A DNA stretch of 64,000 nucleotides from Macrostomum lignano (lineage: Eukaryota): contig NIVC01000110.1 in the NCBI GenBank assembly GCA_002269645.1, positions 310,001 to 374,000 of the forward strand, written 5' to 3'. Within the stretch, counting starts at the first letter, position 1. Each line of letters begins with the position of its first letter. The notes beneath the pieces were generated by a model that was given only the letters and a program-made list of their open reading frames with translations, was not told where the DNA came from and did not search any database. Position numbers and translations under genes: made by a program. Shown piece after piece: positions 20,010 to 64,000 of this stretch.

Positions 20010-20408
<399 letters not shown>

Positions 20409-22571: not shown

Positions 22572-22579
22572 TGACTCAC

Positions 22580-23443: not shown

Positions 23444-24300
<857 letters not shown>

Positions 24301-24344
24301 AGATAGATAGATAGAGATATAGATAGATAGATATAGATAGATAT

Positions 24345-24411
24345 AGAGGACAGATATGAGGGGTAGATTTGAGATAGATAGATGAGGGATATTTGAGGAT
24401 AGATATGAGAT

Positions 24412-24444
<33 letters not shown>

Positions 24445-27046: not shown

Positions 27047-27828
<782 letters not shown>

Positions 27829-31665: not shown

Positions 31666-32577
31666 ATGGCCCAATCGAGGCCGTTGCCCCCGATTCCGAA
31701 CTCCGGAGGTCTTGGCGATGTTTCAGTTCGCAATGCCAGATCTAACCTGCTTGAGGCCATCCGAGATAGTCGCCAGCTAGACTATGGCGAACTGCTGCAA
31801 ATGCAGATCAACCAAAAGTACAAGCTAGTGGATGCTCGCGCCGCCATGTCGGGTGACAAAAAATCAGCCGAAGACGTCAAGCGATCCTGCCTATTTCTGC
31901 GCAACAAGCTCAAGCACCTGCTGCGTCCAGAGAGAGACCGACCACCGGATTGGCACAGGGTGCAGGCCTCATTCTGCCAGTGCCTCTCGGGCGTTGACCA
32001 ACTATTAGAACGCATTGGTTTCGAGCGCAACGATCAGAATTTCACCATTACATCTGAACGATTGTCGAACGAAGCCCTTGTTGATACTCTCGTAGACTTG
32101 TACCTGCTGGCTGAAGAGCTGAGCCTCATTATTAAGGATAACCATCCGTTGGGTGCTAAGCTTATCGCCAAGAATGAACAGCCAGCTCTTAGGCGTGCCG
32201 GACCCTCCGGGATGCAGGATAGAGTAAACGCAATGCAGCGCAAGCTCAACCAGAATTGCGACCTGTGCGGCGAGGTCGCGGCAACGGTGGCCTGCCAGGA
32301 GAAGCACTGCTCCAAGCGGCGCCTGTGCGAGAGTTGCGACGGACGCTGGCACGGGCATCCGGACCGGCGCAGTCATAATCGACGTAAAATCAGCGACGCC
32401 GTCGGATCCAACGCTGTGCGGTTGGTGCCACCGGGAGTGGTGGGACCTGCCAGTGTGCAGTTGAACTCTGGAGTTAGGAAGGTTGTGTCAAACAGTCAAG
32501 CGGTTAGTTATAAGTCTCAACTTGGTCTCATGGGTAATAATAGTCCAAATCTACCCCAACAGCAGCAGCAACCTGCG

Positions 32578-32609
<32 letters not shown>

Positions 32610-35226
32610 ACCTGCTGTTGCTGTGCCGCCTCCGAGGGTTCCACCGCCGCAGTATCCCGGACAAAAACCGCGAAATGTTTTACCTCAACAACAGCCACAG
32701 CAGCCACCGCGACAGCAGCCTAGCGATACCAGCGAGTCAGATGCCCGTGTAATGAAACTCAATGAGTTCATGATGTCGTTAAAGCCTATTAGCGAGGAGC
32801 GCAGCTTTTCGAAGCCAGCTGGCGACATTCGTCGACCGCCGACGCCTGAAGAAGAGTTTTTTGACTGCTCAGATCAGCTGCCTCCGCAGCCATCGCTGCC
32901 AGCTCCGCAGCCACCGCAACCGCCGCAACAGCCACAATCGATACCGAAGCCCAAGCCACGTCTGTCTAAATCAATTGTGCCGAAACCTGAGACACCTCCA
33001 CCCCCTCCGCAGCAGCAGTTGCCTCCAAGGCCCGTGCCTAACGAACCAACGGAAGCGAACAGTTGGCCTTGCCCCGTTTGTACGGCGCTAAATCCTATAG
33101 CCGAGACGAAGCTAATAAAAAGTAGCCGCGTCATATGCTCAGTTTGTTCGATGACTTGCGACGATCAGGAAATTATTGCAAAGGTCAAAAAACAGCAGCA
33201 AGAGCCAGCAGTAAAACAGCCGGAAGCTCCAAAGCAGGTGGAGATTCCAGATCGCGCACCACTGAAGCCTAAACAAGAGCCGCTGTCCAATGAACAAGAT
33301 TGGTCTTGCTCCGCATGTACAATGCTTAATCCCATTACTGCAAAGTCTTGCGCAATTTGCCAAACTCCACGCGAACTCGGTGGCAGTGACGGTATCAAGC
33401 TTCCCTTTGAGGTCAAGCCAGTAGCCCGTCAGCGAAATCCAGAGATGGAGGAGGCTGCAAACAGACAGCTGTTGAAGCTTATACAAGATATCGAATTTTC
33501 TGGCTTCGATGGTCGGTTGGGCCAGCTGTATTTGGTGGCAACTGCTGATGATGGCGCCCAGTCGGAGGCTAGATTCAAGGCCTGGGTGGCAGAAAAATGG
33601 CCGGCACTGATTGAGCAGGTCGGTTGCGAGGTAGCGAAAGTGCTGCAGGGTGATAATGCAGGTGTGCGACCCTCATTTGACGATATCGCATCTGCTGTGC
33701 TGGACAACACATGCGACCTTGAAGCGGCTATTCAGATGTGCGCCCAGCGTCACAAAGCAAAGGTCGCTTGGATTGCGGAGAACTGCCCAGAGTTGCTGCA
33801 GTCAGCCCATGAGGTGAACCTTGATTTTCAGGGCGATGGTGATTTTACTAATTTTTATCAAGCCGAAAACGAACGGGTCTTTAGAGATTTCGCACAATTT
33901 TTGTTCTGCAAGGAGGGCCAGGAGCCACCTAAGTTCGACAGAATGAATGGAAGTGAGACCTCCCTCCACTGTCTGATGGGAGAGTTCGACTTAAGAAAGA
34001 TTAGCGATGCTAAAATACTTTTTCAGCTTATGCAAAACAGCGAGTTTAAGGGCCGCGATCTTTACGACCTTGCAGAGGCTGCAAAGGGCAGCAATAACAG
34101 GTGCGATTATGTTGACTTCGTGAAAAGTTTCTTGGGGTGCGCGTGCAGTTGCTGTTCTGGAGAGTTTCCAAAGCACAAGTTATTGCCAATGGCTTCATGC
34201 CAGTGTGAGTTGTGCCATGAGTGCTTTCGTAACTTCGTAGCAACGGCTATGACAGGTGGCGGGCATGTCACAGATCTTTGTTGCCCGATGTGCCAAGTAC
34301 CCAATGCAAATCAAATAGAGGAGTTCGAAAGCCATTTCGGAATTCTTCTGCCACAGATCAAACAGATACAAGACTTTAAACAATCTGAATATAAATTTGA
34401 TGGAAACGTTGTTGAGCTTGTGGAGCAAAAGATCACAGAGTGGAATCTTATTCGAGATCCAAACTTTCGCTGGTGCAGCAGCTGTGGCTTTGGAATGGTT
34501 CTCGGAGAGATCATGATCGGTTTGAAGTTCCAATGTCCTAATTGTGAGGCCTTTACCTGCAAAGAGTGTAAAAAACCGTGGAAAGATCAGCATGAGGGCA
34601 TTGACTGCGACCAGTTTGAGAAGTGGCTGATGGACAATGATCCAGAATACCAGGAGAAAGGTGTTGGATTTTTTCTGCAAGCCAATGGCATTGAATGTCC
34701 TAATTGTGGCTTCCAGTACGCCCTAGCAAAGGGTGGCTGTCTGCACTTCACCTGCCGAATGTGCCGCTTTCAATTCTGCGCAGGCTGTGACGGCGAGTAT
34801 ACAATCATTCACGGCAGAGGCCTGAGTTGCAAACACCCGAGAGACTGTCTGTTCTACCTTAGAGACTTTGGAGTGGACCGGCTCCAGCAGCTGCTGAATT
34901 TACACAGAGTGGAGTTCGAGAGCGAAGCTGAGAACCCAGTTGACAAATGCGAAGTGATGGAGCAAAAGGAAGTTGGAAGCGGTTTGAAGGATGAGCCGTG
35001 CGGTGTCGACGTGAAACCGGGCCAGGCGAACCTGTGTGAGAAGCACTACATTGAGTACCTTGTATCGCTGGTGAACAAGCAAAAGCTGGATCCCGTCAGT
35101 GTGATGGCCGAAGGCGAGCTCAAGGGAGTGTGTCTGCGTGAAGGAATTGACTGCTCGGGAGTCGGCGAGAACAACGTGGCAGCCCTGCGAGCTTTGATTG
35201 CTCAGCAGAAGCCACTTGTGAAGTGA
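31666..35226 (+). CDS. RNF31: H1: full-length HOIP/RNF31-like RBR E3 ligase (PUB-like, B-box, 2 NZF, UBA-like, RING1-IBR-RING2-LDD), 1186 aa, single exon
   Basis: YALAKGGCLHFTC (catalytic Cys and His), HPRDCLFYLRD and LCEKHYIEYLVSLVN match human HOIP motifs. B-box LCESCDGRWHGHPDRRSH. PUB-like ELSLIIKDNHP. Confidence 0.93.
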
Positions 35227-36522: not shown

Positions 36523-36561
36523 ATGCATGCGAGAAAGAATCAATCTACGAGCAGTTGCAAG
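36523..36561 (+). CDS. Putative first micro-exon of H2 (MHARKNQSTSSCK)
   Basis: ATG to AAG|GTAATT is phase 0 and compatible with the acceptor at 36914/36915. No homology supports it. Confidence 0.3.
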
Positions 36562-36914
36562 GTAATTTTAGCATGATATTCTGCAAGTCTCTGATCGCTA
36601 TATACTCGTACCTCTGAAACTACTTATCCAGTGCCTTATTGATGATATTTAAAAAGAGCCTTGCCACTTTCTTAGTAGTTTACTAACGATGTGCTACAAT
36701 CGAAATTAATAACACCTGTAGTATGTTAGGAAGTCTCGTGTTTATATTTATTCTAATTTTTTGGTTTAAGAAGTAAACAATCCTGTAAGTTAGCTACCGT
36801 CATAGAAACGATTTTGCAGTTAGACCAAAACTTAAACCACAAATAGTCTAGTTCCTAGCTACCATTTCAAGTCGTAATCCTAACTAAGGACTGTATCGCG
36901 TACTTTTTTTCCAG

Positions 36915-39491
36915 GCCACATCGAGCGGCAGCAGCTCCAAACGTAGAGGCAATCATTCAGCCTCATTCCTGCTGCATCAGAATGAAAAACAAAAACAAAA
37001 AAGCCATAAAAACAAGGCAACTGTCAAGAAGAACAGCAGCAGCACTGCCACTTGGCGCTGCCGTCACTGCACCTACGAGAATCAGCTGGCTGAGACGCGT
37101 CGCACCGCCGGTTCTGGTCGACTCATCTGCGAAGTCTGCGGCAAATCTAGCGAGCCCGTTGGCGTTCACAACGCTGCACCGACTGCGGTTGCCGAGCACT
37201 CCGACTGTGGCGACTGTCCGCTGTGCCTGGAGTCGCAGCTGGCATTGCTGACAGTCCCTCTGTGCGGCTGTCGGCTCTGCAGCGACTGTCTGTGTAGATT
37301 CGTCCGAGTCAGCTTGCGCAGTCACGGCTCGGCTGACCGGCTTGCTTGTCCGGTTTGCAGCCGGCCAGATTCGGACACTCTGGCCGATCCTAGTTGTGAG
37401 TACTTTCCCCAGCTGCGGAGTCTGCTAGCGGGCCGGCTCAGCCGCGACCTAATGCAGCAGCTCGACGACAGGCTGCGCGACTGGCGTCTGGAGCGAAGTC
37501 GCAACTTCATGTGGTGCAGCGGCTGCGCTTTCGGCTTTGAAGTTGACGACAACGTCGAGGAGTTGGCGATCCGGTGTCCGCACTGCAGCAAGGAGACGTG
37601 CAGGAAGTGCGGCAAGGCGTGGCACGAGCGGCACCGAGGCGTGAGCTGCCAGCAGTTCGGCGAGTGGCGTCAGCAGACGGACTTGAGCGAGCGCGGACTG
37701 GCGCAGTTCCTGGAGAGTCGGGGCAGCTCGTGTCCAAAGTGCGGCTTCCAGTTCGAGCTGTCTCGAGGCGGCTGTCTTCACCTGACGTGCAGGCAGTGCA
37801 AGGCGGAGTTCTGCAGCGACTGCGGCAGTCTGTTTGTTCGACAGGAGTGCTGCGGCGGGAACAAGGGACTCCATTGCCACCACGGGTCGGAGTGCGTGGA
37901 GACGTTCAGAGACTGGCCGTTGGAGAAGGTTCGGCAGACGGCGCTGGAGCGGGGCGTTCAGCTGGAGCTTGTCGGAGTGGCGGTCGCTGGAGGTCGGTGC
38001 AGCATCCAGGAGCAGAAGGAGACATCAGGAGGCGGTCTGGAGGACGGGGAGTGCGGGAGGCCGGTCGTCGAGTCGGGTCTGTGCGAGTCGCACCTCAAGG
38101 AGGCCCTGGCCAGCGCCATGCGTGGCAGGAAAGTCAAGCAGGCAGTCACCGCCGCCGCCGCCCCTGCCGCATCTAATCCAGTGGAGTCAAAGCTCACTCC
38201 GATGCTCATCGAAATGATGACGCGCCTGCCTCCGCCGTTACTGCCGACTTCTACGCCGCAGGAGGCCGCTCCGCAGCAGCCGTGGATCTGCAGCCTGTGC
38301 CACAATGTCAACTCGCCGGTCAACGTTGAATCCGGTTCGCCTGCCAGCTGTGAGATGTGCGACTCACCAGCAGCTGCCGCTTCTGCGACCTCGAATCAAA
38401 GGCCTGGAGGTGGCACAACAGCGTTGCAGGCAGTCAGGACTTCCATACCTTCTGTGACTAACTGGTTCGCTCGGCCTCCACCGCCTCTGCTGCCGAATCA
38501 GAGCTTGAGACCGTCGCATTACAGACAGCCAATGCAGAGCATGAACTCAATGCAGCCAATGCAGCCAATGCAGAGCATGAACTCAATGCAGCCAATGCAG
38601 AGCATGAACTCAATGCAGCCAATGCAGAGCATGAACTCAATGCAGCCAATGCAGAGCATGAACTCAATGCAGCCAATGCAGAGCATGAACTCAATGCAGC
38701 CAATGCAGAGCATGAACTCAATGCAGCCAATGCAGAGCATGAACTCAATGCAGCCAATGCAGAGCATGAACTCAATGCAGCCAATGCAGAGCATGAACTC
38801 AATGCAGCCAATGCAGAGCATGAACTCAATGCAGCCAATGCAGAGCATGAACTCAATGCAGCCAATGCAGAGCATGAACTCAATGCAGCCAATGCAGAGC
38901 ATGAACTCAATGCAGCCAATGCAGAGCATGAACTCAATGCAGCCAATGCAGAGCATGAACTCAATGCAGCCAATGCAGAGCATGAACTCAATGCAGCCAA
39001 TGCAGAGCATGAACTCAATGCAGCCAATGCAGAGCATGAACTCACCAGTACCGCCAATGCAGAGCATGAACTCAACAGTACCGCCAATGCAGAGCATGAA
39101 CTCACCAGTACCGCCAATGCAGAGCATGAACTCACCAGTACCGCCAATGCAGAGCATGAACTCACCAGTACCGCCAATGCAGAGCATGAACTTACCAGTA
39201 CCGCCAATGCAGAGCATGAACTTACCAGTACCGCCAATGCAGAGCATGAACTCACCAGTACCGCCAATGCAGAGCATGAACTCACCAGTACCGCCAATGC
39301 AGAGCATGAACTTACCAGTACCGCCAATGCAGAGCATGAACTCACCAGTACCGCCAATGCAGAGCATGAACTCACCAGTACCGCCAATGCAGAGCATGAG
39401 CTCAAGAATGCAGCAGTTCACGAGCCCGTTTCAGCCAATAAATGCGACTCAACAGAATCTAAAATCTTACCACTATCAACAACAGAATTAA
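36915..39491 (+). CDS. H2: HOIP-like RBR ligase paralogue (NZF, RING1-IBR-RING2-LDD variant, NZF, M/Q/S/N repeat tail)
   Basis: The frame is open from the acceptor TTTTTTTCCAG| (36915), upstream of the ORF-track start at 37245. Motifs: WRCRHCTYEN, ELSRGGCLHLTC, LHCHHGSEC, LCESHLKEAL. Confidence 0.85.
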   Translation, partial: ATSSGSSSKRRGNHSASFLLHQNEKQKQKSHKNKATVKKNSSSTATWRCRHCTYENQLAETRRTAGSGRLICEVCGKSSEPVGVHNAAPTAVAEHSDCGDCPLCLESQLALLTVPLCGCRLCSDCLCRFVRVSLRSHGSADRLACPVCSRPDSDTLADPSCEYFPQLRSLLAGRLSRDLMQQLDDRLRDWRLERSRNFMWCSGCAFGFEVDDNVEELAIRCPHCSKETCRKCGKAWHERHRGVSCQQFGEWRQQTDLSERGLAQFLESRGSSCPKCGFQFELSRGGCLHLTCRQCKAEFCSDCGSLFVRQECCGGNKGLHCHHGSECVETFRDWPLEKVRQTALERGVQLELVGVAVAGGRCSIQEQKETSGGGLEDGECGRPVVESGLCESHLKEALASAMRGRKVKQAVTAAAAPAASNPVESKLTPMLIEMMTRLPPPLLPTSTPQEAAPQQPWICSLCHNVNSPVNVESGSPASCEMCDSPAAAASATSNQRPGGGTTALQAVRTSIPSVTNWFARPPPPLLPNQSLRPSHYRQPMQSMNSMQPMQPMQSMNSMQPMQSMNSMQPMQSMNSMQPMQSMNSMQPMQSMNSMQPMQSMNSMQPMQSMNSMQPMQSMNSMQPMQSMNSMQPMQSMNSMQPMQSMNSMQPMQSMNSMQPMQSMNSMQPMQSMNSMQPMQSMNSMQPMQSMNSMQPMQSMNSMQPMQSMNSPVPPMQSMNSTVPPMQSMNSPVPPMQSMNSPVPPMQSMNSPVPPMQSMNLPVPPMQSMNLPVPPMQSMNSPVPPMQSMNSPVPPMQSMNLPVPPMQSMNSPVPPMQSMNSPVPPMQSMSSRMQQFTSPFQPINATQQNLKSYHYQQQN
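38526..39398 (+). repeat. In-frame coding tandem repeat: 27-bp (MQSMNSMQP) then 30-bp (MQSMNSPVPP) units
   Basis: Directly visible; both unit lengths are multiples of 3. Confidence 0.97.
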
Positions 39492-41100: not shown

Positions 41101-42210
41101 ATGCCACACTTATCGCAGTGGCAGTGTCCGCACTGTACCTTCATCAATGATGGAGCACAGGGTCGCCAACTGCACAGAAGGCTCATCTGCTTAATGTGCG
41201 GAAAATCCACTGATTTCTCAGAGCTGAAGACATCTGCAGAGTGCCCCGTGTGCACCGACGACAAGAAGCTGGTCGAGGTTCCCCTGTGCGGCTGCGAGGT
41301 CTGCAGCGACTGTCTGTGCCAGCAGATCGAGGTGCGCCTGATGAACGACAGCTCGGTGTCGGTGCTGACGTGTCCGGTGTGCGACAAGCTGGACGACCGA
41401 GCTCTGACGGACACTTCGTGCGAGTACTTTCCGCTGCTTCGGAGGCTGCTGGCGGGCCAGCTGAAGCCCGCAGTGATGAAGAAGCTGGATGAGAGACTGC
41501 GCGACTGGCGACTGAAGCTGACGGACAACTTCTGCTGGTGCAGCGGGTGCTCGAACGGTTTCGAGGTGTCGGAGCACCACGACAGGCAGGTGCGGTGCCC
41601 GCACTGCGGCAAGGAGACGTGCAGGAAGTGCGGCAAGGCGTGGCACGAGCGACACCGAGGCGTGAGCTGCCAGCAGTTCGGCGAGTGGCGTCAGCAGACG
41701 GACTTGAGCGAGCGCGGACTGGCGCAGTTCCTAGAGAGTCGGGGCAGCTCGTGTCCAAAGTGCGGCTTCCAGTTCGAGCTGTCTCGAGGCGGCTGTCTTC
41801 ACCTGACGTGCAGGCAGTGCAAGACGGAGTTCTGCAGCGACTGCGGCAGTCTGTTTGTTCGACAGGAGTGCTGCGGCGGGAACAAGGGACTCCACTGCCA
41901 CCACGGGTCGGAGTGCGTGGAGACGTTCAGAGACTGGCCGTTGGAGAAGGTTCGGCAGACGGCGCTGGAGCGGGGCGTTCAGCTGGAGCTTGTCGGAGTG
42001 GCGGGCGCTGGAGGTCGGTGCAGCGTCCAGGAGCAGAAGGAGACGTCAGGAGGCGGTCTGGAGGACGGGAAGTGCGGGAGGCCGGTGGTCGAGTCGGGTC
42101 TGTGCGAGTCGCACCTCAAAGAGGCCCTGGCCAGCGCCATGCGTGGCGACAACAAGAAGCCCCGTGTAGGCGTTGCTAACGTCGCATCTTCAAGGCGAAA
42201 GCAAACCTCA
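41101..42210 (+). CDS. H3 exon 1: HOIP-like RBR ligase paralogue (NZF, RING1-IBR-RING2-LDD variant)
   Basis: WQCPHCTFIN and RBR-LDD motifs as in H2 and H5. Phase-0 donor TCA|GTAAGC at 42210/42211. Confidence 0.85.
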
Positions 42211-42296
42211 GTAAGCTATTCTAGAAGGTATATTTTGTCTTTGCACGTAGTAAAGAGATGTCGCTAACGTCTTGACGAATAACTTTCCCTATCCAG

Positions 42297-42686
42297 GGTG
42301 CTACTGGCGCCGGTTCCAGTCAGAAGACTAATCCTGGAAGCCGCAGAAAGCCACGCAACCACCTGTCCATCGGTGGCAAGGACTGGACTGTGGCCACTGT
42401 TGGCAAAGAGGCAAAGTTTACTTTAACGGACACCAAAGGCGTTGATAGAGGTCAACCATTTTTCCGTCTCGTACCGGAAGGCGTTGAAAGTGACGGTGCT
42501 CAAGTGCCAGTTCGATTCAGAATTGAAGCCTCCGAAGGCAAAGTGAAATACCTCTGCAGTTTTACTCCGAAAATGCCGGGAGTTCATCTGTTAACATTTG
42601 GCTTTGGCAATGTAACAATGGGCCGGTCGTACAGGGTGGAGGTTCGCGATCTAGCAGCAACTGATGGTGCCGTAGATGCAGGTTAG
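42297..42686 (+). CDS. H3 exon 2: filamin/ABP280-type Ig-like repeat
   Basis: Branch point GCTAAC and acceptor TTTCCCTATCCAG| (phase 0). ATVGKEAKFTL...YLCSFTPKMPGVHLLTFGFG...YRVEV fits the filamin repeat pattern. Confidence 0.7.
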   Translation, partial: GATGAGSSQKTNPGSRRKPRNHLSIGGKDWTVATVGKEAKFTLTDTKGVDRGQPFFRLVPEGVESDGAQVPVRFRIEASEGKVKYLCSFTPKMPGVHLLTFGFGNVTMGRSYRVEVRDLAATDGAVDAG

Positions 42687-43231
42687 TTTTGTTGCAATGA
42701 CTGGTTAGGTTTCAGTTGAAATCGTCTACTCAGACAAGATATTGAGACTCGAAGCAGATTTGTTTTTTTATTTAATAACAAGTTGGATAACTTTACTGAG
42801 GTGAATTTTTATTGGTTCAACTGAATGGCAGTTCGAGTTTCTGTTTGTTTGGATTAGAGTTTGGGACTCTAACTACTGTGGCTCTGTTTATGATTTTATT
42901 TCTATTACGAGTATTCGAACCAAAAAACCGAGGCGTTGGATTCGACTGACTGACTTTTCCTGTTGATGCGATCACGCAAGGGGGGTTTACCTACAGTCTG
43001 ATGTAATCAATGGTTTTAATCACATTGATGTTAACTTGCAAAGTAAGATGTTGATACAAGGGGAAGGCTTCAAGTAAGATGCTTCCGATGATTTTGAAAT
43101 CGCTCTAAAGGTCTGCTGTCTGGGCGAACCAGTAGTTCGGTCTGGTGTATGGAGGGGGGTGGTTTATTCTTTAATTGTTAAATCAGAGTAGTTCGGTTAG
43201 CTATTTCTGAGTTGGTCTATTAGAGGGTATA

Positions 43232-43515
43232 GTATCTTACTTGACTTGACTTAGCTTCAAGGGGTTTCGGGCATCTGGATAGAGCGGGAAGGCGTCGTCG
43301 CCCTATAGCTGCAGTTCCCGCCTCCGGAGAGTCCGGAAGGTGGATGGTCGCTCGCCCGGTAGCCCTTGGGTAGCGGACGAGCTGGCAGAGATTCTCCTGG
43401 CCGGAAAACGTCGGAAAGGTCTGGGTTTGGGCCGAAGTTGGTGAGCCTATCCTGAGTAAAGGCGGGGCATTCACAAATAAAGTGCTCCGCATTCTCAACA
43501 CCGGAGAGGCAAAAT
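43232..43515 (-). mobile_element. 5'-truncated non-LTR retrotransposon 3' end
   Basis: Minus-strand CLFCLSGVENAEHFICECPAFTQDR is the C-terminal CCHC knuckle typical of LINE ORF2. It ends in a short (AAGTC)n tail. Confidence 0.65.
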
Positions 43516-44817
43516 AAACAAATGGCAAAATGGTGTTTCACTTTGTAAATTACGGTAATGACGAGTAGGAACGAAAATAGATCACTTCATCAGAGTTTTA
43601 TTAATTGTGTCAAGTGGAGTAAAAGACTGTTTCTTAGCGCGAAAAACTTCTACCTTGCAGATCGGCATCAAGGGAAAGCCTACAGTCAGCGCAGGACTCG
43701 ACTAGAACTCCTGTCGAGTACAGGGCTTCCAACACTGCATTGAGAAATGTGATGGATTTATTCCAACCAATTTTGAGTGATTCAATGCTGAGTTGTTTTT
43801 GTAAACAAAAAGTTCAATTATTCCGTTTTTCAACACAGAATATACCAAAATATTCTCTGTGATTTTATACAATGGTATTATATTTTATAAACGTGATATT
43901 TACCTTAAATTTAAATGTATGATTTAAGACAAAGATAGCTGTGCTGTATCCATATAGTCTTTGTTTTTCATTATTAAGATACTCCAGATTTTGAATGTTT
44001 TGCTGTTAAAGCGTTTTGCTGAAGTGTTAATTTATAAGGTACGAAACGTTTTTGTTTTTGTTCTTTTCTCAACTTCAAATTATGGTTCACTGTGTGATGC
44101 GGTATCAAAACTCAGTTTTTAAAAAACTAAATCGTAATGAAACAGTCGTGAAAAATCAATAGTTTTGGTAAAGGTAGAAAACAATCAATGCACATTAACA
44201 GGTTAAAAGCATGGACAGGCACGAATACAGTAGTGCAACTCTCAGATAATACGGAGGACGTGACCTGCGCCACTGTGCTAGGGCTGGGTGTTGAGGCTAG
44301 GCGAGCTTAGGCAGAACTTCAATGATTAGTGAGTTTGTAGTCTAATTGGCATTTGTAGATTTTTTAAAGCACTTTTCTGGTTGACAACTACAGCACTTAC
44401 CGTATCATACTGAATGAGATGATTTTGTATTGCAGATGGTTTAAATTGCTCCTTAGCCTTTAGGGTAAACAGCTGACTTTGGTTTCCCCAGTGGGAATAC
44501 CAAAACTTTGTTCTTTTTCGTTGCCAAATAAGCTCGACAATTCATCTCAAAGTGCTAAATGCGTTGAAATATTTATTGACTTTAATATTTATTATTTACT
44601 TATTAATTCTTTATATCGCCTAGAAATCAACACCCTACCTGAATATTTCTCGAAAAAACCCTCTAGAGATCACTTTGTTTCTCTTTAGTTTATGCTCTCG
44701 TAGCTAGATTACTCAAACTTGTCAATCCACAGTTGCTCTTGATTGAGTTTAAAGCTTCTACCCTATTTCAATTTCAGCAGCGCTCCTGACCAACAAGCAA
44801 ACTTGGTTGTGCAACGC

Positions 44818-55025: not shown

Positions 55026-56627
55026 ATGGATTGCGTCAACTGGGAGTGCAAGATTTGCACTTTTAACAACGAGTTTGTCGCCTTCTGCCTGCCAGTCAGC
55101 GAAGGACGCATCTTCTGCAAAGTTTGCGAATCCTGTCACGGCTTGAAGGAAATTGTGACTGATGTAAACCAGCGCACTGGTCAATACCTGTGCATCAGGT
55201 GCACTCTTCTCAACCCAAGAAGCCGCCACTATTGCTCCGCCTGCGGTTCTTGGCTGCTTTTTGTGTCAGAGTCGCCGCCTGAATCAGAGCAGCTGCAGTC
55301 TGAGCTGTCCTTCCTAAGCTTAACATCTCGGTCACTCAGTGATGTTGATGAGGACAATGAAAATAACGAAGAGATGATAGACTTGATGTTAAGATTCAGT
55401 TTCACTAAACTGGAACACTCGGCTAACTTTATTAAGCTTCGCGAACAGCCAGAGTTCCGGAATTTCGATCCAAACGATTTGGCCGAAGCTGTTCGCAGTT
55501 GCGGAGACCAGCTTGACTACGTGGACTTTGTGAGTGCGTACTTCAAGAACGAGTGTCCCATCTGTTTTGATAGCTTTCCCAGGCACAAAGTTCTTCAGAT
55601 GGCCTCCTGCCAGTGCAAGTTGTGCTTCAGCTGCTTCCGGAACTTTGTGACCGCCAGTCTGGACAACAACGATCATGTGTCTCATCTTCAGTGTCCGATC
55701 TGTAACACACCGGACTCTGAGAACGAAGCGGAGCTGGAGAACTATTTTGAGTATCTGCTAATTCAGGTGAAAAGCTTTCAGCATGCTGAGATCAGGTTCG
55801 AAGCTGACAAGATCAACATGCTCGAGCAGAGGCTTCGCGATTGGAACCTGATGCGGGACCCGAATTTCCGGTGGTGCAGCCACTGTCCAAATGGAGTTGT
55901 ACTGAGTGAGCAGATGCGGGGTCTGAAGTTCCAGTGCAACCAGTGCTCAAAGTACACGTGCAAGCAGTGCCGCAAGCAGTGGCGAGAGCAGCACGAGAAA
56001 ATCAGCTGCGAGCAGTTCCAGCAGTGGCTGGTGGAGAATGATCCGGACTACCAAGCGAAGGGAGTGGCAGCGTTTCTAGAAAACAACGGCATCGAGTGTC
56101 CGAAGTGCAAGTTCAAATACGCTCTGGCGAAGGGCGGGTGCATGCACTTCACCTGCCGGCCGCCGTGCCGGGCAGAGTTTTGCTCAGGTTGCGGCGGCTT
56201 TTTCAAAAGACTGCACGGTCGAGGTCTCGTCTGCGAGCATCCGAGAGACTGTCTGTTCTACCTGAGAGACTTTACTGTGCGAAGTCTTCAGAAGCTGCTC
56301 AGCGACCACGGGGTTCAGTACGAGACGGCTGCAGAAGGCGCCGCTTCTGGCACCTGCGATGTGATGGAGCAGAAAGAGAGTGGCAATCTGGTTGACGAAG
56401 CTTGCGGCAGACCCGTTGAGGGTCACGCAAAACTGTGCGGCAAGCACTACAAAGAGTACCTTGTATCGCTGATCAACAAGAATCGCTTGGATCCAGTTGA
56501 GGTGATGGACGTTGAGCAGTTGAAGGAAACTTGCAGAAGGCATAAAATTGAGGTTCAGAATAGTATTTCCACAGATTCGACAGCTTTGCGTGCACTGATC
56601 GTGCGCCAAGTTCCGCTTCGGTCTTAA
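55026..56627 (+). CDS. H6: compact canonical HOIP-like ligase (2 NZF, UBA-like linker, RING1-IBR-RING2-LDD), 533 aa
   Basis: YALAKGGCMHFTC, HPRDCLFYLRDF and LCGKHYKEYLVSLINKNRLDP. Closest to H1, but lacks PUB and B-box. Confidence 0.9.
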   Translation: MDCVNWECKICTFNNEFVAFCLPVSEGRIFCKVCESCHGLKEIVTDVNQRTGQYLCIRCTLLNPRSRHYCSACGSWLLFVSESPPESEQLQSELSFLSLTSRSLSDVDEDNENNEEMIDLMLRFSFTKLEHSANFIKLREQPEFRNFDPNDLAEAVRSCGDQLDYVDFVSAYFKNECPICFDSFPRHKVLQMASCQCKLCFSCFRNFVTASLDNNDHVSHLQCPICNTPDSENEAELENYFEYLLIQVKSFQHAEIRFEADKINMLEQRLRDWNLMRDPNFRWCSHCPNGVVLSEQMRGLKFQCNQCSKYTCKQCRKQWREQHEKISCEQFQQWLVENDPDYQAKGVAAFLENNGIECPKCKFKYALAKGGCMHFTCRPPCRAEFCSGCGGFFKRLHGRGLVCEHPRDCLFYLRDFTVRSLQKLLSDHGVQYETAAEGAASGTCDVMEQKESGNLVDEACGRPVEGHAKLCGKHYKEYLVSLINKNRLDPVEVMDVEQLKETCRRHKIEVQNSISTDSTALRALIVRQVPLRS

Positions 56628-57483: not shown

Positions 57484-57837
57484 GTGTGCACCCTGGCGCA
57501 CTTTAAGCGACATTGTCACACAACCGGCGAGAGGCATTGCTGCCCATTCCCCCGACTTCCCTGAGCAGGCACACAAGCGCGCGGATACGTACGCAGTCAT
57601 ACGCACAGGCACACACTCACACAGGAGTGTACAGCGGCGCTAACTTTATTTATCGTTAGGCATGTACACTTCACTGTGCCTTGGGTTTAGGCCTTAAGGG
57701 CGTTAATTTCACGAGTAGAGCCAAGCCTAGATTCCAATTTAGTCCCAGATTAATTTAGATTACTGCTGACTGCAATTGGAATAGAACCTGGGCCGCTGGA
57801 ATATCAAAGCGCCGCGCTGGACCACTGGGCTACGTCC
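57484..57837 (-). mobile_element. tRNA-derived SINE family A, copy 3
   Basis: The reverse complement starts GGACGTAGCCCAGTGG (A box) and contains GGTTCTATTCC (B box); body shared with copies 1 and 2. Confidence 0.83.
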
Positions 57838-57895
57838 TCTTTTTTATCAGATATTCTGATTTAAAAATTCTAGGTGTGTCGCCTAGTAGGGGGGA

Positions 57896-58197
57896 TGTAG
57901 CCTACTGGAAGTGGTTCAAGCGTCGGGCTAATGACTTGAAGGTCGGGGATTCGATTCTCGACCCACTCGAAACAATTTGTGTCCTTGATTGAGCAAGACA
58001 CTTAACTCTGCATTGCTTCAGTTCACCTAGGTGTAAAATGGGTGCCAGCATTAGCTCGGGTAATTGAAGGTTGGGTGTGGCGACCCCCCCCCCCCAGTCC
58101 TTAGACTGAACAGCCGTACGCAGTCTTCAGATGCGCGGTGCAATAGCTGCGGCTGAGCTGTCGCCTGTCGGTTGCACATCTGGCCCAATTGAGGCAT
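57896..58197 (+). mobile_element. tRNA-derived SINE family B (CORE-like), copy 2
   Basis: GTGTCCTTGA...GCAAGACACTTAACTCT...TGTAAAATGGG resembles the MIR/CORE domain; 3' body shared with B1 and B3. Confidence 0.8.
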
Positions 58198-58295
58198 GTG
58201 TTATCATTTTTTTATTACGAGCTATTATTATTGAAGAAAGTATTTTATATTTTCTCCAGCTGACCACTCTCGCCGCCCAGTTCCACTTGCTCTCC

Positions 58296-58610
58296 ATGAC
58301 GTCATCAATAGTAGACTGCAGTTTCTGCGGCGACAATCCAGCCGCAGTCTACTGCAGTACGCCCACCTGCAGCCGCAACATTCTGTGCCGCAGCTGCGAC
58401 TCGCTCTGGCACGGACACCCTAATCGTAGAAATCACGTGACCGAACCTTATCATCAGCAGCAGTCTGGCCTTGCAATTGCTCCGTCTAGCACTGAAGTTT
58501 CATCGCGCAGATTTTTTAACATCGAATTCTGGATTTTTTATGGTCCAGCAGTTCTGCTCTTTGCATTGCTGTTGCTAAACTTGTGCGGCAGAGCTGATAC
58601 TCCGTCTTGA
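58296..58610 (+). CDS. B-box-only micro-ORF (104 aa) with a C-terminal hydrophobic segment; truncated paralogue of the H7 5' end
   Basis: CSFCGDNPAAVYC...LCRSCDSLWHGHPNRRNH matches the H7 and H1 B-box. It ends FWIFYGPAVLLFALLLLNLC...*. Confidence 0.6.
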   Translation: MTSSIVDCSFCGDNPAAVYCSTPTCSRNILCRSCDSLWHGHPNRRNHVTEPYHQQQSGLAIAPSSTEVSSRRFFNIEFWIFYGPAVLLFALLLLNLCGRADTPS

Positions 58611-60861: not shown

Positions 60862-61150
60862 GGAAGTTGTAGCCTAGTGGTTAGAGCGTCGGACGCACGA
60901 GATAAAGGTCGGGGGTTCGATTCTCGACCTACTCGGGGGGGCGGGAATTTGTGTCCTTGAGCAAGAAACTTAACTCTGCATTGCTTCAGTTCACCCAGCT
61001 GTAAAATGGGTGCCAGCATTAGCTGGGGTAATTTAGGGTGTGTGGCGACCCCCCCGTCCTTGGACTGAACAGCCGTACGCAGCCTTCAGATGCCCCGGGC
61101 AGTAGCTGCGGCTGAGCTGTCGGTTGCACATCTGGCCCATTGGGGCAGGT
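60862..61150 (+). mobile_element. tRNA-derived SINE family B (CORE-like), copy 3
   Basis: TAGCCTAGTGG, GGTTCGATTCT and a CORE-like block; shared 3' body. Confidence 0.83.
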
Positions 61151-61375
61151 TTAATCAAATATTAGTTTTTTATTGTTCTGAGGTGTTGTTTTGTGAGATT
61201 CTATAATAATTTCAAATAGTAACGACAGTAAAAAAAGTTCATCAAGGCTCACGGTTTACAACTTTCGAACGAGGTTCCATCTGGTTCTAGATAGCAGAGT
61301 CCCGATTATTTAGGACAACTTTTTTTAGGTCAATCAAATATTAACCAAGCAGTCAATACTCCCACAGAGCGCAGT

Positions 61376-64000
61376 ATGGCTACAGTAGACTGTAGCTTTT
61401 GTGGCGATTACCCAGCCGAAGTGCAGTGCGAAACAGCCGGCTGCAGCCGGAATCTGCTGTGCAAAAGCTGCGACCAGATTTGGCACAACCATCCGAATCG
61501 GAAAAATCACCAGACCAGACCCTACCAGCCCGGGTCGGCCGCTGGTCCTTCACGATCTCCCCAGTCAGGCCGCACGCCGCCGAAACGACCGCCACCGCCT
61601 CAACCAACATCTCCGCCACCTGCTTCTAGCAGCAGCGGTGGCTGGCAGTGCCAATTCTGCACTTTCATCAACGAGGATTCTACGCGAAGGATATGCAGCG
61701 TTTGTGGCAAGAGTGATGGAACACCTCCGATTGAGTTTAAGGAAGCCAGTCCTCCTGCAGGTAGCAACAACAATCGGTCAAATTCTGGCACAGGTGTTGC
61801 TAAACCGACAGTACCTGGTGGTTCCGCTCAGTCTGCTTCTTATTCGTCAGCTGTTTTGCCTAGCGAGTCTGATAGAGGATCGAGCGGAACATTCGATTCT
61901 CGGGCACCGGCTCACCAGAAGCCTGACAATGCTGCTCACAGTGTTGGCCGTACAGATACTAATGATAGTGACCTAGCTTTTGGAAGCAATAAGAATGCGC
62001 ACCAGAATTCATTTTTGGACGTAAAAAATCAGCAAGGTCAATTTCAAGGTCAAGATAAAGCAAATGATCTTTATGAGCAGCAGAGACAGTATCTAAATAA
62101 TCTTCAGCAGCAGCAGAGAAATCCACAACAGGATGAACAGCAGAGAGAGCAACAGCAGAGAGAGCAGCAGCAGAGAGAGCAACAGAAGAGAGAGCAGCAG
62201 CAGAGAGAGCAACAGCAGAGAGAGCAACAAAAGAGAGAGCAGCAGCAGAGAGAGCAGCAGCAGAGAGAGCAGCAGCAGAGAGAGCAACAGCAGAGAGAGC
62301 AACAGCAGAGAGAGCAACAGCAGAGAGAGCAGCAGCAGAGAGCGCAGCAGCAGAGAGAGCAACAGCAGAGAGAGCAACAGAAGAGAGAGCAGCAGCAGAG
62401 AGCGCAGCAGCAGAGAGAGCAACAGCAGAGAGAGCAACAGAAGAGAGAGCAGCAGCAGAGAGAGCAACAGCAGAGAGAGCAACAGAAGAGAGAGCAGCAG
62501 CAGAGAGAGCAACAGCAGAGAGAGCAACAAAAGAGAGAGCAGCAGCAGAGAGAGCAGCAGCAGAGAGAGCAGCAGCAGAGAGAGCAACAGCAGAGAGAGC
62601 AACAACAGAGAGAGCAGAATCGGCAACTACATGAACATCCTGCAACTAATTTTCCGTCAAAAGTAGCCTCTCAAAATTTCCAAGAAAAAAATTCTCAAAG
62701 CAGCTGGGTCTGCAAGCACTGCACGCTGCTCAACCCGGCTCCATCGCAGCCAGAAACTGGGCTTAGGATTTGCTCTGCTTGCGCACACACTACCGAACTC
62801 AGTGGTGGCGCCACTAAAAGAGGCGCAGTCGCTCGCAGTGAAGCCGCTTCTGCTGCGTCCATGCTGGCCTCCGCAGCCACAGAAGCCGCCAGTGATGCAG
62901 TCGGAGCGGCAGGAAGCGAGTCCAGCACAGGTTTTACCGAATGGTCCGATAGAGCTCAAAACCTGGCTTCGCAGCTCAGAGTGGAAGACTGGGTAGCAGA
63001 GAGAGTTCTGGCTGTCAAAAGCATGCCCAAGTTTAACGAGTTTTCCGAATCAGACCTTGTAGTTGCGATTGAGTCGTGTGGCGGCCTGGCGTTCGAAGAC
63101 GATGCTCTGATGAGCCAACTGCGTCGCAAGTGCAGCCGCTGTTCGAATGATTTACCGCGTCACAAACTTGTTGCCATGGCAGCATGCGAGTGCCAGATGT
63201 GTCCAGAGTGTTTTCGAAAATTTCTTCTTGAGCTGAAAAGCAGCAGAATTCAGTGCCCTGTCTGCAAGGATGTGTGCGATGATGAAGACAGTCGGGATTT
63301 CATGAGGATGCAGCTGATGGAAATGGCGGATGTGCTTGGCGCTGACGCTGTGGCGTATGCATTGGCGCGCCTTGAAGATAATTCAAGCAAAAATAGCGAC
63401 GAAGGTTGGGAAGTGGTCGAAGCTCCAGGCAAGAGAGGGAAAAAATCAAAAGCCTCAAAAGATGCCTCGACAGTTCCAGTAAACATTTCGAATGGCTATT
63501 GTCCTCATAGGAATGGTGGACTACCGAAAAGAGACACTCGGCAGTTCGAAAGTCACTGCAAAGTTTGTAAGCAGGATGTATGCAAGAAATGCTTTGGCTT
63601 CTGGACTGATCACCAACGGATGGACTGCAGCAGTTATCGGGTTCATGCAGCAGGTATTAAAAAAGGAGATTATAACAAAATGCACATAGCTGCTCAAAAG
63701 CAAGGCCTCTCGCCTACTGACGCAAACCTGCACGATCAGATGATGGAGCATCTGACTTTTGATTTGGTTTGCCCAGACTGCAGTCTTTGCTACCAGCGAG
63801 TGTCCAAATCTGGAGTTCCTGTGTTTCACTGCAGATGTGGGCATTCATTCTGTCCATTTTGTCGAAGCCCTCAGTTGAGACCTCACGAAGGCTGCCAAAT
63901 TAAAGGAATTCATGTGCACCACCAGCGCCAGTGCTACTTTTATTTGAAGCAAGTAAAACAGACGACTCTACTTGATTTGTTGAGGAGAAATAAGATTAAA
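61376..64000 (+). CDS. H7 (partial, runs off the window): catalytically inactive HOIP-like paralogue (B-box, NZF, REQQQ repeats, NZF, RING1-IBR-RING2*-LDD)
   Basis: It is absent from the ORF track because it has no stop. The frame starting at ATG 61376 stays in register at my spot checks (62003, 62615, 62705, 63815, 63962). RING2 reads SKSGVPVFHC. It is similar to H4 from about 62000 onward. Confidence 0.86.
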   Translation, partial: MATVDCSFCGDYPAEVQCETAGCSRNLLCKSCDQIWHNHPNRKNHQTRPYQPGSAAGPSRSPQSGRTPPKRPPPPQPTSPPPASSSSGGWQCQFCTFINEDSTRRICSVCGKSDGTPPIEFKEASPPAGSNNNRSNSGTGVAKPTVPGGSAQSASYSSAVLPSESDRGSSGTFDSRAPAHQKPDNAAHSVGRTDTNDSDLAFGSNKNAHQNSFLDVKNQQGQFQGQDKANDLYEQQRQYLNNLQQQQRNPQQDEQQREQQQREQQQREQQKREQQQREQQQREQQKREQQQREQQQREQQQREQQQREQQQREQQQREQQQRAQQQREQQQREQQKREQQQRAQQQREQQQREQQKREQQQREQQQREQQKREQQQREQQQREQQKREQQQREQQQREQQQREQQQREQQQREQNRQLHEHPATNFPSKVASQNFQEKNSQSSWVCKHCTLLNPAPSQPETGLRICSACAHTTELSGGATKRGAVARSEAASAASMLASAATEAASDAVGAAGSESSTGFTEWSDRAQNLASQLRVEDWVAERVLAVKSMPKFNEFSESDLVVAIESCGGLAFEDDALMSQLRRKCSRCSNDLPRHKLVAMAACECQMCPECFRKFLLELKSSRIQCPVCKDVCDDEDSRDFMRMQLMEMADVLGADAVAYALARLEDNSSKNSDEGWEVVEAPGKRGKKSKASKDASTVPVNISNGYCPHRNGGLPKRDTRQFESHCKVCKQDVCKKCFGFWTDHQRMDCSSYRVHAAGIKKGDYNKMHIAAQKQGLSPTDANLHDQMMEHLTFDLVCPDCSLCYQRVSKSGVPVFHCRCGHSFCPFCRSPQLRPHEGCQIKGIHVHHQRQCYFYLKQVKQTTLLDLLRRNKIK
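62130..62612 (+). repeat. Coding 15-bp repeat (REQQQ) in H7
   Basis: Directly visible. Confidence 0.96.

Follow-up and report, generated by a model that had tools for sequence, protein, structure and literature searches.

HOIP (RNF31), the catalytic subunit of LUBAC, is to our knowledge the sole enzyme known to form Met1-linked ubiquitin chains. Its LDD extension (PF18091) is, as far as we know, unique among the RBRs, and we know of hardly any studies of LDD specificity other than mutagenesis of the human protein. The PUB pocket of human HOIP (Asn102) recruits OTULIN, SPATA2-CYLD and p97, and E3 ligases have non-catalytic partners (HOIL-1L and SHARPIN for HOIP, and pseudo-enzyme paralogues more generally); a pseudo-enzyme turned regulator is usually marked by fold and binding modules kept and the nucleophile lost. 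In the human enzyme, Arg935 and Asp936 touch the acceptor ubiquitin and their Ala mutants lose linear activity (PMC7125101), while C916A still forms the thioester and makes no linear chains (PMC3463842). Furthermore, Drosophila LUBEL (CG11321) produces linear chains without HOIL-1L, SHARPIN or OTULIN (PMC5090701, PMC5413910). The view of the initial annotation that HOIP is a single-copy gene in well-studied animals is only roughly true, an additional RNF31-like paralogue being present in fishes, sharks and frogs.

The window analysed here is a stretch of 64,000 nt of contig NIVC01000110.1 from the flatworm Macrostomum lignano, and the array occupies its positions 31666-64000. The best reading, to which we give a probability of about 80%, is that RBR-LDD ligase genes of the HOIP (RNF31/LUBEL) type have genuinely multiplied in tandem in this species, as a lineage-specific event. 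Seven RBR-LDD-like copies (H1-H7), all on the + strand, were found by tblastn of ORF products against the window, and none at positions 1-31000; these copies and a B-box micro-gene, as initially annotated, were confirmed by tblastn and Pfam. The features are as follows.

H1, 31666-35226, +: single exon, 1186 aa, full-length HOIP-like; PUB-like region at aa ~17-156 (model only), B-box 198-237, P/Q-rich linker, two NZF (467, 546), UBA_HOIP 631-705, RING1-IBR-RING2-LDD ~835-1157; GGCLHF 34732-34749, KHPRDC 34831-34848, YLRDF 34855-34869.
H2, 36523-39491, +: two exons.
H2 exon 1, 36523-36561, +: MHARKNQSTSSCK; donor GTAATT at 36562.
H2 exon 2, 36915-39491, +: NZF, RING1-IBR-RING2, truncated LDD, NZF-like, M/Q repeat; GGCLHL 37767-37784, HHGSEC 37878-37895, TFRDW 37902-37916.
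H3 exon 1, 41101-42210, +: NZF, RING1-IBR-RING2, truncated LDD; GGCLHL 41788-41805; donor GTAAGC at 42211.
H3 putative exon 2, 42297-42683, +: in frame past an 86-nt GT..AG intron; weak filamin/ABP280-like repeat.
H4, 44818-48309, +: 1163-aa predicted pseudo-ligase; B-box, extra UBA-like and RING1 module, ~400-aa Q/E/R repeat (15-nt unit, 45391-46530), NZF, UBA-like, RING1, altered IBR, RING2 without catalytic Cys/His, LDD; KSGSLVF 47752-47772 (RING2), NLKQV 47887-47901 (LDD).
H5, 50354-52267, +: 637 aa; NZF, linker, RING1-IBR-RING2, truncated LDD, C-terminal NZF-like; GGCLHL 51470-51487.
H6, 55026-56627, +: 533 aa; two NZF, helical region, RING1-IBR-RING2-LDD; GGCMHF 56133-56150, EHPRDC 56235-56252, YLRDF 56259-56273.
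B-box-only ORF, 58296-58610, +: 104 aa, hydrophobic C-terminal tail.
H7, 61376 to beyond 64000, +: open at the window end, whole protein 998 aa; B-box, NZF, Q/E/R repeat 62136-62616, NZF, UBA-like, RING1, altered IBR, dead RING2, LDD; KSGVPVF 63806-63826 (RING2), YLKQV 63941-63955 (LDD).

The array does run past the window, as had been proposed: H7 ends 369 nt beyond it and is followed by two further genes with B-box, NZF and RING1/IBR-like modules, in neither of which a RING2-LDD was found. H9 is split over two frames. The genes are almost intron-less, as the founder copy probably was. The two exons of H2 encode 13 + 858 aa, which is the GenBank product of 871 aa, and the putative second exon of H3 is absent from the GenBank model. 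The B-box-only ORF, with 59% identity to the H7 N-terminus, is a duplicate, cut short, of 5' sequence from an H7-type gene.

Membership of the HOIP family is clearest in H1, H2, H3, H5 and H6, where Pfam IBR/IBR_1 and PF18091 score over cut-off and where the zinc Cys/His pairs of RING1-IBR-RING2 are complete when aligned to HOIP of human, a mollusc and a cnidarian. PF18091 is covered over the whole model in H1 (93 bits) and H6 (84 bits), and only at model positions ~25-75 in H2, H3 and H5 (26.7-29.2 bits, cut-off 23). In the same Pfam scans no match was obtained for H4 and H7, which keep all zinc pairs except the first of the IBR (C-x-H instead of C-x2-C). In each class that was compared with the PDB, HOIP chains come out on top; for H4 these are RBR-LDD chains (5EDV, E=1.6e-21), the phmmer alignment running through the LDD. 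Moreover, HOIP RBR-LDD structures are the best fold matches of the H4 structure model (TM 0.68-0.76 for RING2-LDD), which, like the model of the H1 N-terminus, was made from alignments including true HOIPs and is thus biased to the HOIP fold. H4 and H7 are thus derived from HOIP by descent and predicted fold but, lacking Cys885 and His887, are not predicted to be ligases.

The shuffling of accessory modules described initially holds for the B-box and NZF modules and for the Q/E/R and M/Q repeats (in-frame tandem repeats of 15-nt and 27-nt units, the latter in H2 with ~30 copies of the 9-aa PMQSMNSMQ at 38557-39405), but less so for two others. The filamin match on the putative H3 exon 2 is weak (PF00630, E=0.0022, 19.3 bits, under the 26.9 cut-off), and the PUB-like domain of H1 is backed by a model only (AF2, N-terminus alone; TM 0.62-0.72 to HOIP PUB structures); judged by alignment only, this domain is without the six-residue KFNNPV loop bearing human Asn102. 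UBA_HOIP is matched in H1 only (25.5 bits, cut-off 22.4), and the Pfam scans found no UBL domain in any array product.

The copies fall into three classes, each with 100% bootstrap and with residues as initially described: A (H1/H6), B (H2/H3/H5) and C (H4/H7). The equivalents of Cys885, His887, Cys930, Arg935 and Asp936 are present in A and B, the RING2 catalytic motif being GGC[LM]H in all five copies and the Arg935/Asp936 site YLRDF in A and TFRDW in B. The loss of the catalytic Cys and His in class C is borne out by GSLVF (H4) and GVPVF (H7) in RING2, and the Arg935/Asp936 site is also lost there (NLKQV and YLKQV). Nevertheless, the class C zinc ligands are unchanged in all four sequences, in which the former catalytic position varies (S/Y/V/V), and the zinc scaffold and the predicted HOIP fold are kept despite the catalytic loss.

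H1 and H6 had been called canonical, which is right for the active site and HPRD; however, a deletion of 8-9 residues removes Cys911 and Cys916 from H1, its counterparts H1' and H1b', H6 and gene A of a second cluster, all of which also have S/K in place of His923/His925. This insert is kept in all aligned non-flatworm sequences, from sponge to human, and without it H1 and H6 are not fully canonical. Similarly, H2, H3 and H5 had been regarded as rewired: the active site is intact and HGSE is present (GSE for Pro927-Asp929), but HPRD corresponds to human residues 926-929 (numbering checked) and is not the specificity pair, Arg935/Asp936, which is kept. Class B also misses the last ~60 LDD residues (~1013-1072 equivalents). 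Classes B and C have four possible zinc-finger ligands, with a spacing different from that of the Cys911/Cys916 insert. The full set of canonical determinants is carried by none of the copies.

A second colinear array was found on NIVC01000691.1, with the same gene order, mosaic DNA identity (86-98.6%) and a different structure: it bears an H3'-Q/E/R-H1b' fusion ORF of more than 1219 aa with the extra H1b' module, and repeat lengths differ. Depending on the part of the cluster, the two arrays diverge by as little as ~1% or by >30%, the genome-wide SNP divergence of M. lignano being ~2.2% (PMC10733133). Within the array, the RBR-LDD core of H3 (41238-42170, +) and that of H5 (50920-51852) share 97.3% DNA identity, and the flanks of the two copies differ, as would be expected if one had been duplicated recently or gene conversion had acted on this tract. 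Haplotypes or homeologues thus vary in copy number and in structure, and arrays unlike in structure, together with gene-conversion tracts, fit a dynamic cluster. A further, unlinked HOIP-like cluster lies on NIVC01001484.1. The at least seven diverged copies are a real tandem cluster, of which no account was found in the searchable literature.

In a neighbour-joining tree all M. lignano copies form one group, which indicates a lineage-specific expansion; the support for monophyly in this distance tree is moderate (bootstrap 71%) and may reflect long-branch attraction, and the term lineage-specific carries no date, since the databases searched contain no other Macrostomum proteins. Class C occurs in both clusters, as P0125 joins H4/H7 with 100% bootstrap, and when 1.84 billion representatives were searched exhaustively with HMMER, no close relative of this class was found outside M. 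lignano. The vertebrate RNF31-like/lubel paralogue forms its own clade (99.7%), unrelated to the flatworm classes. The expansion would have arisen as genes were duplicated locally again and again, with accessory modules reshuffled and with gene conversion.

The reading frames are intact as proposed, ORFs of 533-1186 codons being unbroken on two independent scaffolds amid AT-rich, stop-rich DNA. Pairwise Nei-Gojobori dN/dS is 0.12-0.68 over all genes and modules tested; between counterparts, some pairs of which are perhaps not strict ones, it is 0.15 (H6), 0.17 (N-terminal part of H1), 0.39 (H5), 0.45 (H2), 0.53 (H3) and 0.51-0.52 (RBR-LDD of H4/H7). These counterpart values (0.15-0.53) are significantly below 1 (P<0.05) for all seven copies, the catalytically dead ones included. 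The copies are not decaying, then, and every one is under purifying selection, with constraint relaxed in classes B and C (0.4-0.55) as compared to H6. Moreover, dS between the classes is saturated, which places their split long before the recent genome duplication. GenBank annotates this assembly from transcripts (PMC5730564); its models cover H1, H2, H3/H5, H6, H7 and H8 on NIVC01000110.1, and H1', H4', H6', BB' and H7' on the other scaffold. One of them is an H3/H5 chimera, so its transcript support can be assigned to neither copy. The objections foreseen by the initial annotation are hence not seen: dN/dS is below 1 for every copy, transcript-derived models lie over most of them, and the colinear array speaks against an artefact. 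Its likeness to immune gene clusters extends to the structural and copy variation between arrays, but gene-wide pairwise tests, with two to four sequences each, gave no sign of positive selection (dN/dS >1).

That haplotypes or homeologues were wrongly placed in tandem is conceivable in an assembly in which chimeric scaffolds are reported to make up 36% of the Mlig_3_7 length and copy-number errors are common (PMC10733133), and the near-identical H3/H5 cores would suit it; yet neighbouring copies share 22-88% protein identity and have unlike domain architectures, for which a haplotype difference of ~2% cannot account, and the gene order recurs on a second scaffold. The array is not an assembly artefact, the chance of this being negligible. 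That most copies are without function, being young duplicates and fragments that a neopolyploid genome prone to duplication has thrown up and that drift towards pseudogenes, is somewhat less far-fetched, though still very improbable. The assembly is massively redundant, with three subgenomes (PMC5730564, PMC10733133), and debris and rearrangements are present (the B-box-only ORF, whose differences from its counterpart are nearly all non-synonymous, the split H9, the H3'-H1b' fusion and the fast-changing in-frame repeats). Against this stand the long ORFs intact on both scaffolds, the dN/dS significantly below 1, the transcript-derived models and a class separation that predates the recent genome duplication.

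As regards function, a possible, if doubtful, alternative to an immune role is a functional family that serves reproduction, the germline or development. It has a precedent in the 3-21 ARI1 copies with germline functions described for Caenorhabditis (PMC6288150), reproduction genes specific to its lineage are a known trait of M. lignano (PMC5816591), and gene-wide dN/dS is without the positive selection typical of host-pathogen conflict. However, the nameable gene IDs are absent among the entries listed in the neoblast/germline supplements of PMC5816591, the NZF, B-box, PUB and UBA accessories are the ones found in HOIP, a signalling enzyme, and the functions of HOIP and LUBEL known so far are in inflammatory, stress and cell-death signalling. 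It is unlikely that the paralogues alone form LUBAC-like hetero-oligomers, with H4/H7 as scaffold or activator (the HOIL-1L/SHARPIN role) or as decoys. The dead copies are under purifying selection with zinc scaffold, RING1, NZF and UBA-like region intact, their class is old enough to occur in both clusters, the ~400-aa Q/E/R repeat is suited to oligomerisation, and LUBEL is an example of a HOIP-type enzyme that operates with neither HOIL-1L nor SHARPIN nor OTULIN (PMC5413910). On the other hand, mammalian activation consists of UBL binding to the HOIP UBA (PMC3463842), and the array lacks any UBL in Pfam scans and has a recognisable HOIP UBA in H1 only; besides, the short copies are similar to the human HOIP fragment made up of RBR-LDD, which is active on its own, and the PUB-like domain of H1 has no Asn102 loop.

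Under the preferred reading of a lineage-specific expansion, classes A and B, which keep Cys885/His887 and Arg935/Asp936, should take ubiquitin from an E2 as a RING2 thioester and pass it on, to judge from the residues on which human HOIP depends, and would be recruited by their NZF fingers to ubiquitin chains already present. Their product may or may not be Met1-linked, the insert being lost in A and ~60 LDD residues in B. Class C, having lost the catalytic residues, would be unable to form the thioester; since selection maintains its zinc scaffold, its RING1, NZF and B-box modules and its long coiled-coil-type repeat, it is most likely a non-catalytic adaptor or regulator. An immune or stress role is suggested by likeness to HOIP and LUBEL, that is, by analogy only; the cluster gene IDs had no match in searchable literature text and supplements, where no data on expression after infection were found. 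A multi-enzyme HOIP-derived ubiquitin system without counterpart in model animals, with enzymes in A and B and a regulatory class C, is an unlikely joint reading. It might comprise Met1 specificity without the Cys911/Cys916 finger (A) or the C-terminal LDD helices (B), or alternatively other linkages or non-lysine modifications, and pseudo-HOIPs acting on active paralogues through coiled-coil, RING1 and NZF.

The cluster offers natural, selection-kept LDD variants, without zinc-finger insert (A), without C-terminal helices (B) or catalytically dead (C), which could show the parts of the LDD truly required for linear chains and whether pseudo-HOIPs can control active HOIP. It is a clear example of a signalling E3 that has expanded in one lineage, here in a flatworm amenable to RNAi and transgenesis; if the copies are redundant stress or immune ligases, it would be an ordinary gene-family expansion.

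Several known systems can be compared. In fish, shark and frog RNF31-like/lubel (UEV, NID and RBR-LDD), HOIP was also duplicated and gained new N-terminal modules, but as one extra copy with intact catalytic residues and no array. In Caenorhabditis, one RBR subfamily, ARI1, has likewise multiplied in a lineage-specific manner; it differs in being another subfamily, without LDD and tied to germline development (PMC6288150), and we know of no catalytically dead class in it. Class C resembles pseudo-enzyme regulators, with the nucleophile gone and fold and binding modules retained, whereas HOIL-1L and SHARPIN are not derived from the HOIP RING2-LDD and bind via a UBL, class C being a HOIP paralogue without UBL. 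The module order of H1 is identical to that of human HOIP (PUB-like, B-box, two NZF, UBA, RING1-IBR-RING2, LDD), which is one gene as opposed to seven or more paralogues, and from which A differs by the missing Cys911/Cys916 insert, B by the missing LDD end and C by the missing catalytic residues. Finally, LUBEL represents the HOIP type among invertebrates and combines B-box, NZF and UBA with RBR-LDD, but it is a single very large gene without PUB, with the LDD zinc-finger cysteines conserved, and we know of no dead or truncated paralogues of it; it is the best model for how H1 and H6 might work alone.

By descent, the genes of the array are members of the HOIP family. Seven RBR-LDD-like copies (H1 to H7), each on the + strand and lying within 31666-64000, together with an ORF coding for a B-box only, had been proposed in the initial annotation and were recovered by tblastn of long ORF products against the window (assembly Mlig_3_7, GCA_002269645.1; NIVC01000110.1, 310001-374000); the same search found no HOIP-like sequence in positions 1-31000.

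Features of the window (window coordinates)
1-552, 20010-20408, 23447-24476 and 27047-27826: tetranucleotide arrays (TCTA/ATCT/AGAT/ACTA, 100-260 copies)
1745-3474 and 18423-19528, in opposite orientation: two long arrays of the 21-bp satellite GGCGCCAAAATGAGTGCCTGT
4352-4756: 7TM-receptor fragment
11187-13007, - strand: ankyrin-repeat gene
21024-22841, - strand: C2H2 zinc-finger gene with a 10-residue repeat
31666-34833, + strand: H1 GenBank gene model (record 341666-344833)
36523-36561, + strand: H2 exon 1, 13 codons, donor GTAATT, spliced to 36915
38557-39405: in-frame coding tandem repeats, 27-nt unit x30, 95% match
41101-52267, + strand: 494-aa GenBank model made of parts of H3 and H5
45391-46530 and 62136-62616: in-frame coding tandem repeats, 15-nt units x32-79
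57910-58206 and 60876-61157: segment of ~300 nt upstream of the B-box ORF and its repeat upstream of H7
58296-58610, + strand: B-box-only ORF
61376 to the window end and beyond, + strand: H7

Upstream of the array, the tetranucleotide arrays and other satellites occupy most of the 31 kb, and the arrays of the 21-bp satellite flank ~15 kb containing the ankyrin-repeat gene and other satellites. Searches of the window for tRNA genes and Rfam families gave no match, and the intergenic Pfam scan covered stretches that stay open for 60 codons or more.

H1, H4, H5, H6 and H7 each consist of one open frame that starts with ATG and ends at a stop; in H7 this frame runs uninterrupted to a stop 369 nt past the window end (998 aa), so that the array continues beyond the window, as had been anticipated. 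The H2 ORF has no ATG and starts at a TTCCAG acceptor matching the motif published for trans-splicing, and the spliced leader of M. lignano ends in an ATG in frame with it; a start by trans-splicing was nevertheless rejected, since the 13-codon exon joined to 36915 exactly reproduces the 871-aa GenBank product. In H3, a donor GTAAGC at 42211 and an acceptor at 42295-42296 would add in frame a 129-codon exon, missing from the GenBank model, with a weak, below cut-off match to a filamin repeat (PF00630, E=0.0022). The cores of H3 and H5 (933 nt) are 97.3% identical and their flanks unrelated; the 494-aa GenBank model takes its 5' end from H3 and its 3' end from H5, jumping across these cores (637-143=494) and leaving H4 inside an apparent 9.7-kb intron. 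It is probably a transcript-mapping artefact, owing to which H3 and H5 lack gene annotations of their own, and a protein look-up gave no exact match to the H5 product. The mean number of introns per M. lignano gene is 4.9 (PMC5730564), and gene A, a relative in an unlinked cluster, has two introns within its RBR-LDD; compared with these, the array is nearly intron-free, which suggests a processed or intron-depleted founder.

Five copies (H1, H2, H3, H5 and H6) show IBR, IBR_1 and the HOIP-specific C-terminal PF18091 above the Pfam cut-off. H4 and H7 gave no Pfam match at all, and their homology was established by tblastn, phmmer against PDB, a custom HMM and fold search. Thus, H4 matches H1 (E=1.7e-22) and H6 (E=7e-30) by tblastn in the window, and its best PDB sequence matches are HOIP RBR-LDD chains (5EDV, E=1.6e-21). 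For an AlphaFold model of its 484 C-terminal residues (mean pLDDT 71.7), the top 18 fold matches are all HOIP, with TM 0.68-0.76 over RING2-LDD, the model alignment having included true HOIPs and being biased towards that fold to this extent. In protein searches by word index, the queries H1 and H4 were dominated by low-complexity words and gave only one or two matches.

Domain architecture of the copies, and dN/dS against the counterpart on NIVC01000691.1
H1: PUB-like, B-box, NZF, NZF, UBA_HOIP, RBR, LDD; 0.17 (residues 1-720), 0.28 (C-terminal half, against H1b')
H2: NZF, RBR, short LDD, NZF-like, ~30 copies of PMQSMNSMQ; 0.45
H3: NZF, RBR, short LDD, possibly then filamin-like; 0.53
H4: B-box, extra UBA-like+RING1 module, ~400-aa Q/E/R repeat, NZF, UBA-like, dead RBR, LDD; 0.51 (UBA-like-RBR-LDD)
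H5: NZF, RBR, short LDD, NZF-like; 0.39
H6: NZF, NZF, RBR, LDD; 0.15
H7: B-box, NZF, Q/E/R repeat, NZF, UBA-like, dead RBR, LDD; 0.52 (UBA-like-RBR-LDD)

The extra module of H4 is 37% identical to H4's own downstream copy. Residues 1-245 of H1, the PUB-like region, match neither PDB nor Pfam by sequence; the evidence for this domain consists of a profile made from vertebrate N-termini and of a structure model (pLDDT 73, built with vertebrate HOIP N-termini), which 22 HOIP PUB structures match at E~1e-7 and TM 0.62-0.72. The human PUB has a six-residue loop with Asn102 which, in the alignment, H1 lacks.

Residues were compared in the numbering of the 1072-residue human HOIP (GGC885-M-H887; C911-PEPN-C916; H923-G-H925-H926-P-R-D-C930; Y-L-R935-D936-W). 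Cys885 is the thioester acceptor, and Arg935 and Asp936 contact the acceptor ubiquitin, their Ala mutants losing linear activity (PMC7125101); the C916A mutant can form the thioester and yet yields no linear chains, and in C930A the LDD binds ubiquitin more weakly (PMC3463842). Class A (H1 and H6, with gene A and the counterparts H1' and H1b' on a second scaffold) retains Cys885, His887, His926, Cys930, Arg935 and Asp936. An 8-9-residue deletion, however, takes out Cys911 and Cys916, an insert found in all other aligned sequences from sponge to human, and Ser/Lys replace His923/His925. The residue observations of the initial annotation were thus borne out by the alignment, while its description of H1 and H6 as canonical does not hold in full. 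A reading of HPRD as the Arg935/Asp936 specificity pair is ruled out by the human numbering. Class B (H2, H3 and H5) retains Cys885, His887 and Arg935/Asp936 (as TFRDW), with enough Cys/His for the insert; GSE replaces Pro927-Arg928-Asp929, VETF replaces LFYL, and similarity to HOIP stops at human residue ~1012, the last ~60 LDD residues being missing. Class C (H4 and H7) has Ser or Val at Cys885, Val at His887 and Lys-Gln at Arg935-Asp936; in all four class-C sequences the zinc ligands are invariant and the former catalytic position varies (S, Y, V, V).

An assembly artefact, one way in which the array might have been spurious, is contradicted by scaffold NIVC01000691.1, which carries H1', H2', H3', H4', H5', H6', BB' (the B-box ORF), H7' and H8' in matching order, and misassembled haplotypes are ruled out as an explanation by the 22-88% protein identity between neighbouring copies. 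DNA identity between the window and this scaffold ranges from 86% to 98.6%; the three subgenomes of M. lignano diverge by ~2.2% genome-wide and 1.1% in coding sequence (PMC10733133). The locus is structurally dynamic. On NIVC01000691.1 (locus L002, 19885-23541), the frame of H3' stays open across a Q/E/R repeat and takes in a second NZF-UBA-RBR-LDD module, H1b'; this ORF of more than 1219 codons, absent from the window, runs past the end of the locus and would encode a single protein carrying both ligase modules complete. The C-terminal half of H1 in the window is 90% identical in amino acids to H1b' and 58% to H1', and the frame of H2' is 114 codons shorter than the 871 aa of H2. Moreover, the repeats occur in different copy numbers on the two scaffolds, which means that repeat slippage is changing the length of the proteins. 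The B-box ORF has the same length in both scaffolds, with nearly all differences non-synonymous, and in both its terminal segment, FWIF[YN]GPAVLLFALLLLNL, is hydrophobic and conserved and could be a tail anchor. Its upstream segment is repeated upstream of H7 with 81% identity; the ORF therefore originated from a duplicated H7-type 5' end plus upstream region.

Further relatives lie outside the window. On the same scaffold, locus L003 (identical to the window across the overlap) contains at 14703-21697, equivalent to window 66072-73066 and on the same strand, H8 (767 aa) and H9 (split over two overlapping frames). Both have a B-box, a RERDSGQPM repeat, NZFs, two RING1-like modules and an IBR-like one, without RING2-LDD; RBR and LDD were not detected in them by Pfam, and their homology was established by the approaches used for H4 and H7. 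They are RBR derivatives of which only the E2-binding half is left. The unlinked cluster of three genes (NIVC01001484.1:138014-160107) includes gene A, an intron-containing NZF-NZF-UBA-RBR-LDD gene with GGCLHF, HPRS and the zinc-finger deletion of the H1/H6 type, and a dead B-box/NZF/RING1 gene (gene B, P0125), of which a further scaffold (a 375,631-bp contig) carries a near-identical copy, P0258; the third gene also has a B-box.

Each window gene was compared with its NIVC01000691.1 counterpart by the Nei-Gojobori method, with a one-sided Fisher test for dN/dS<1; all values were below 1 (P between 0.048 and 4e-11), and the dead RING2-LDD module alone gave 0.45-0.68, significant in four of five comparisons. 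Every copy, the dead ones included, is thus under purifying selection, weaker in classes B and C. The pairwise estimates gave no gene-wide sign of positive selection, and dS between classes is saturated. A bootstrapped NJ tree of RBR-LDD, with sponge, cnidarian, annelid, mollusc, arthropod, echinoderm and vertebrate HOIPs and the vertebrate UEV-type paralogue as outgroups, placed all M. lignano sequences together (71%), with class B (100%), class C including P0125 (100%) and the H1 group (99%) supported and H6 distinct. Among 1.84 billion representative proteins, an exhaustive HMMER search with the H4 C-terminus found one below 1e-30, H4' itself, the other matches being ordinary HOIPs at ~30% identity, and the databases searched gave no close homologues in other Macrostomum species. 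The premise that HOIP is normally single-copy in well-studied animals needs qualification: fishes, sharks and frogs carry a second HOIP paralogue, and duplication as such is therefore not new.

The GenBank annotation of Mlig_3_7 was made only from RNA-seq-derived transcripts (PMC5730564). It includes models for H1, H2, the H3/H5 chimera, H6, H7 and H8 on the window scaffold, and for H1', an H2' fragment, H4', H6', BB', H7' and H8' on NIVC01000691.1, which indicates indirectly that most copies, or near-identical counterparts, are transcribed. The proteins are deposited only as 'hypothetical', their Mlig gene IDs are absent from the supplements of three M. lignano expression papers and from searchable text, and no paper in the searchable literature deals in this sense with HOIP, RNF31 or LUBAC of Macrostomum, planarians or flatworms.

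By analogy with HOIP biochemistry, RING1-IBR of classes A and B would bind E2~ubiquitin, the RING2 cysteine would take over the ubiquitin and then transfer it, and the NZF fingers would target the enzymes to ubiquitinated complexes. Their products may or may not be Met1-linked, since each class is without one element that matters in the human enzyme. H1, with its UBA and PUB-like domains, would most likely be the regulated full-length enzyme. Judged by its residues, class C cannot be a thioester-forming ligase; the RING1, NZF, B-box and repeat region that it conserves suggest that it binds or regulates other proteins. A role of the array in immunity or stress can be proposed only from the parallel with HOIP and LUBEL (PMC5090701, PMC6462001); by a similar analogy, with the ARI1 expansion of Caenorhabditis (PMC6288150), the role may be reproductive or developmental.

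M. lignano is amenable to RNAi and transgenesis, and the array offers in this tractable animal a natural series of LDD variants together with a conserved pseudo-HOIP. The short forms of the array resemble the RBR-LDD fragment of human HOIP, which is constitutively active (PMC3463842). Of the features defined on the human enzyme, five array copies keep the catalytic ones and none keeps the full set.
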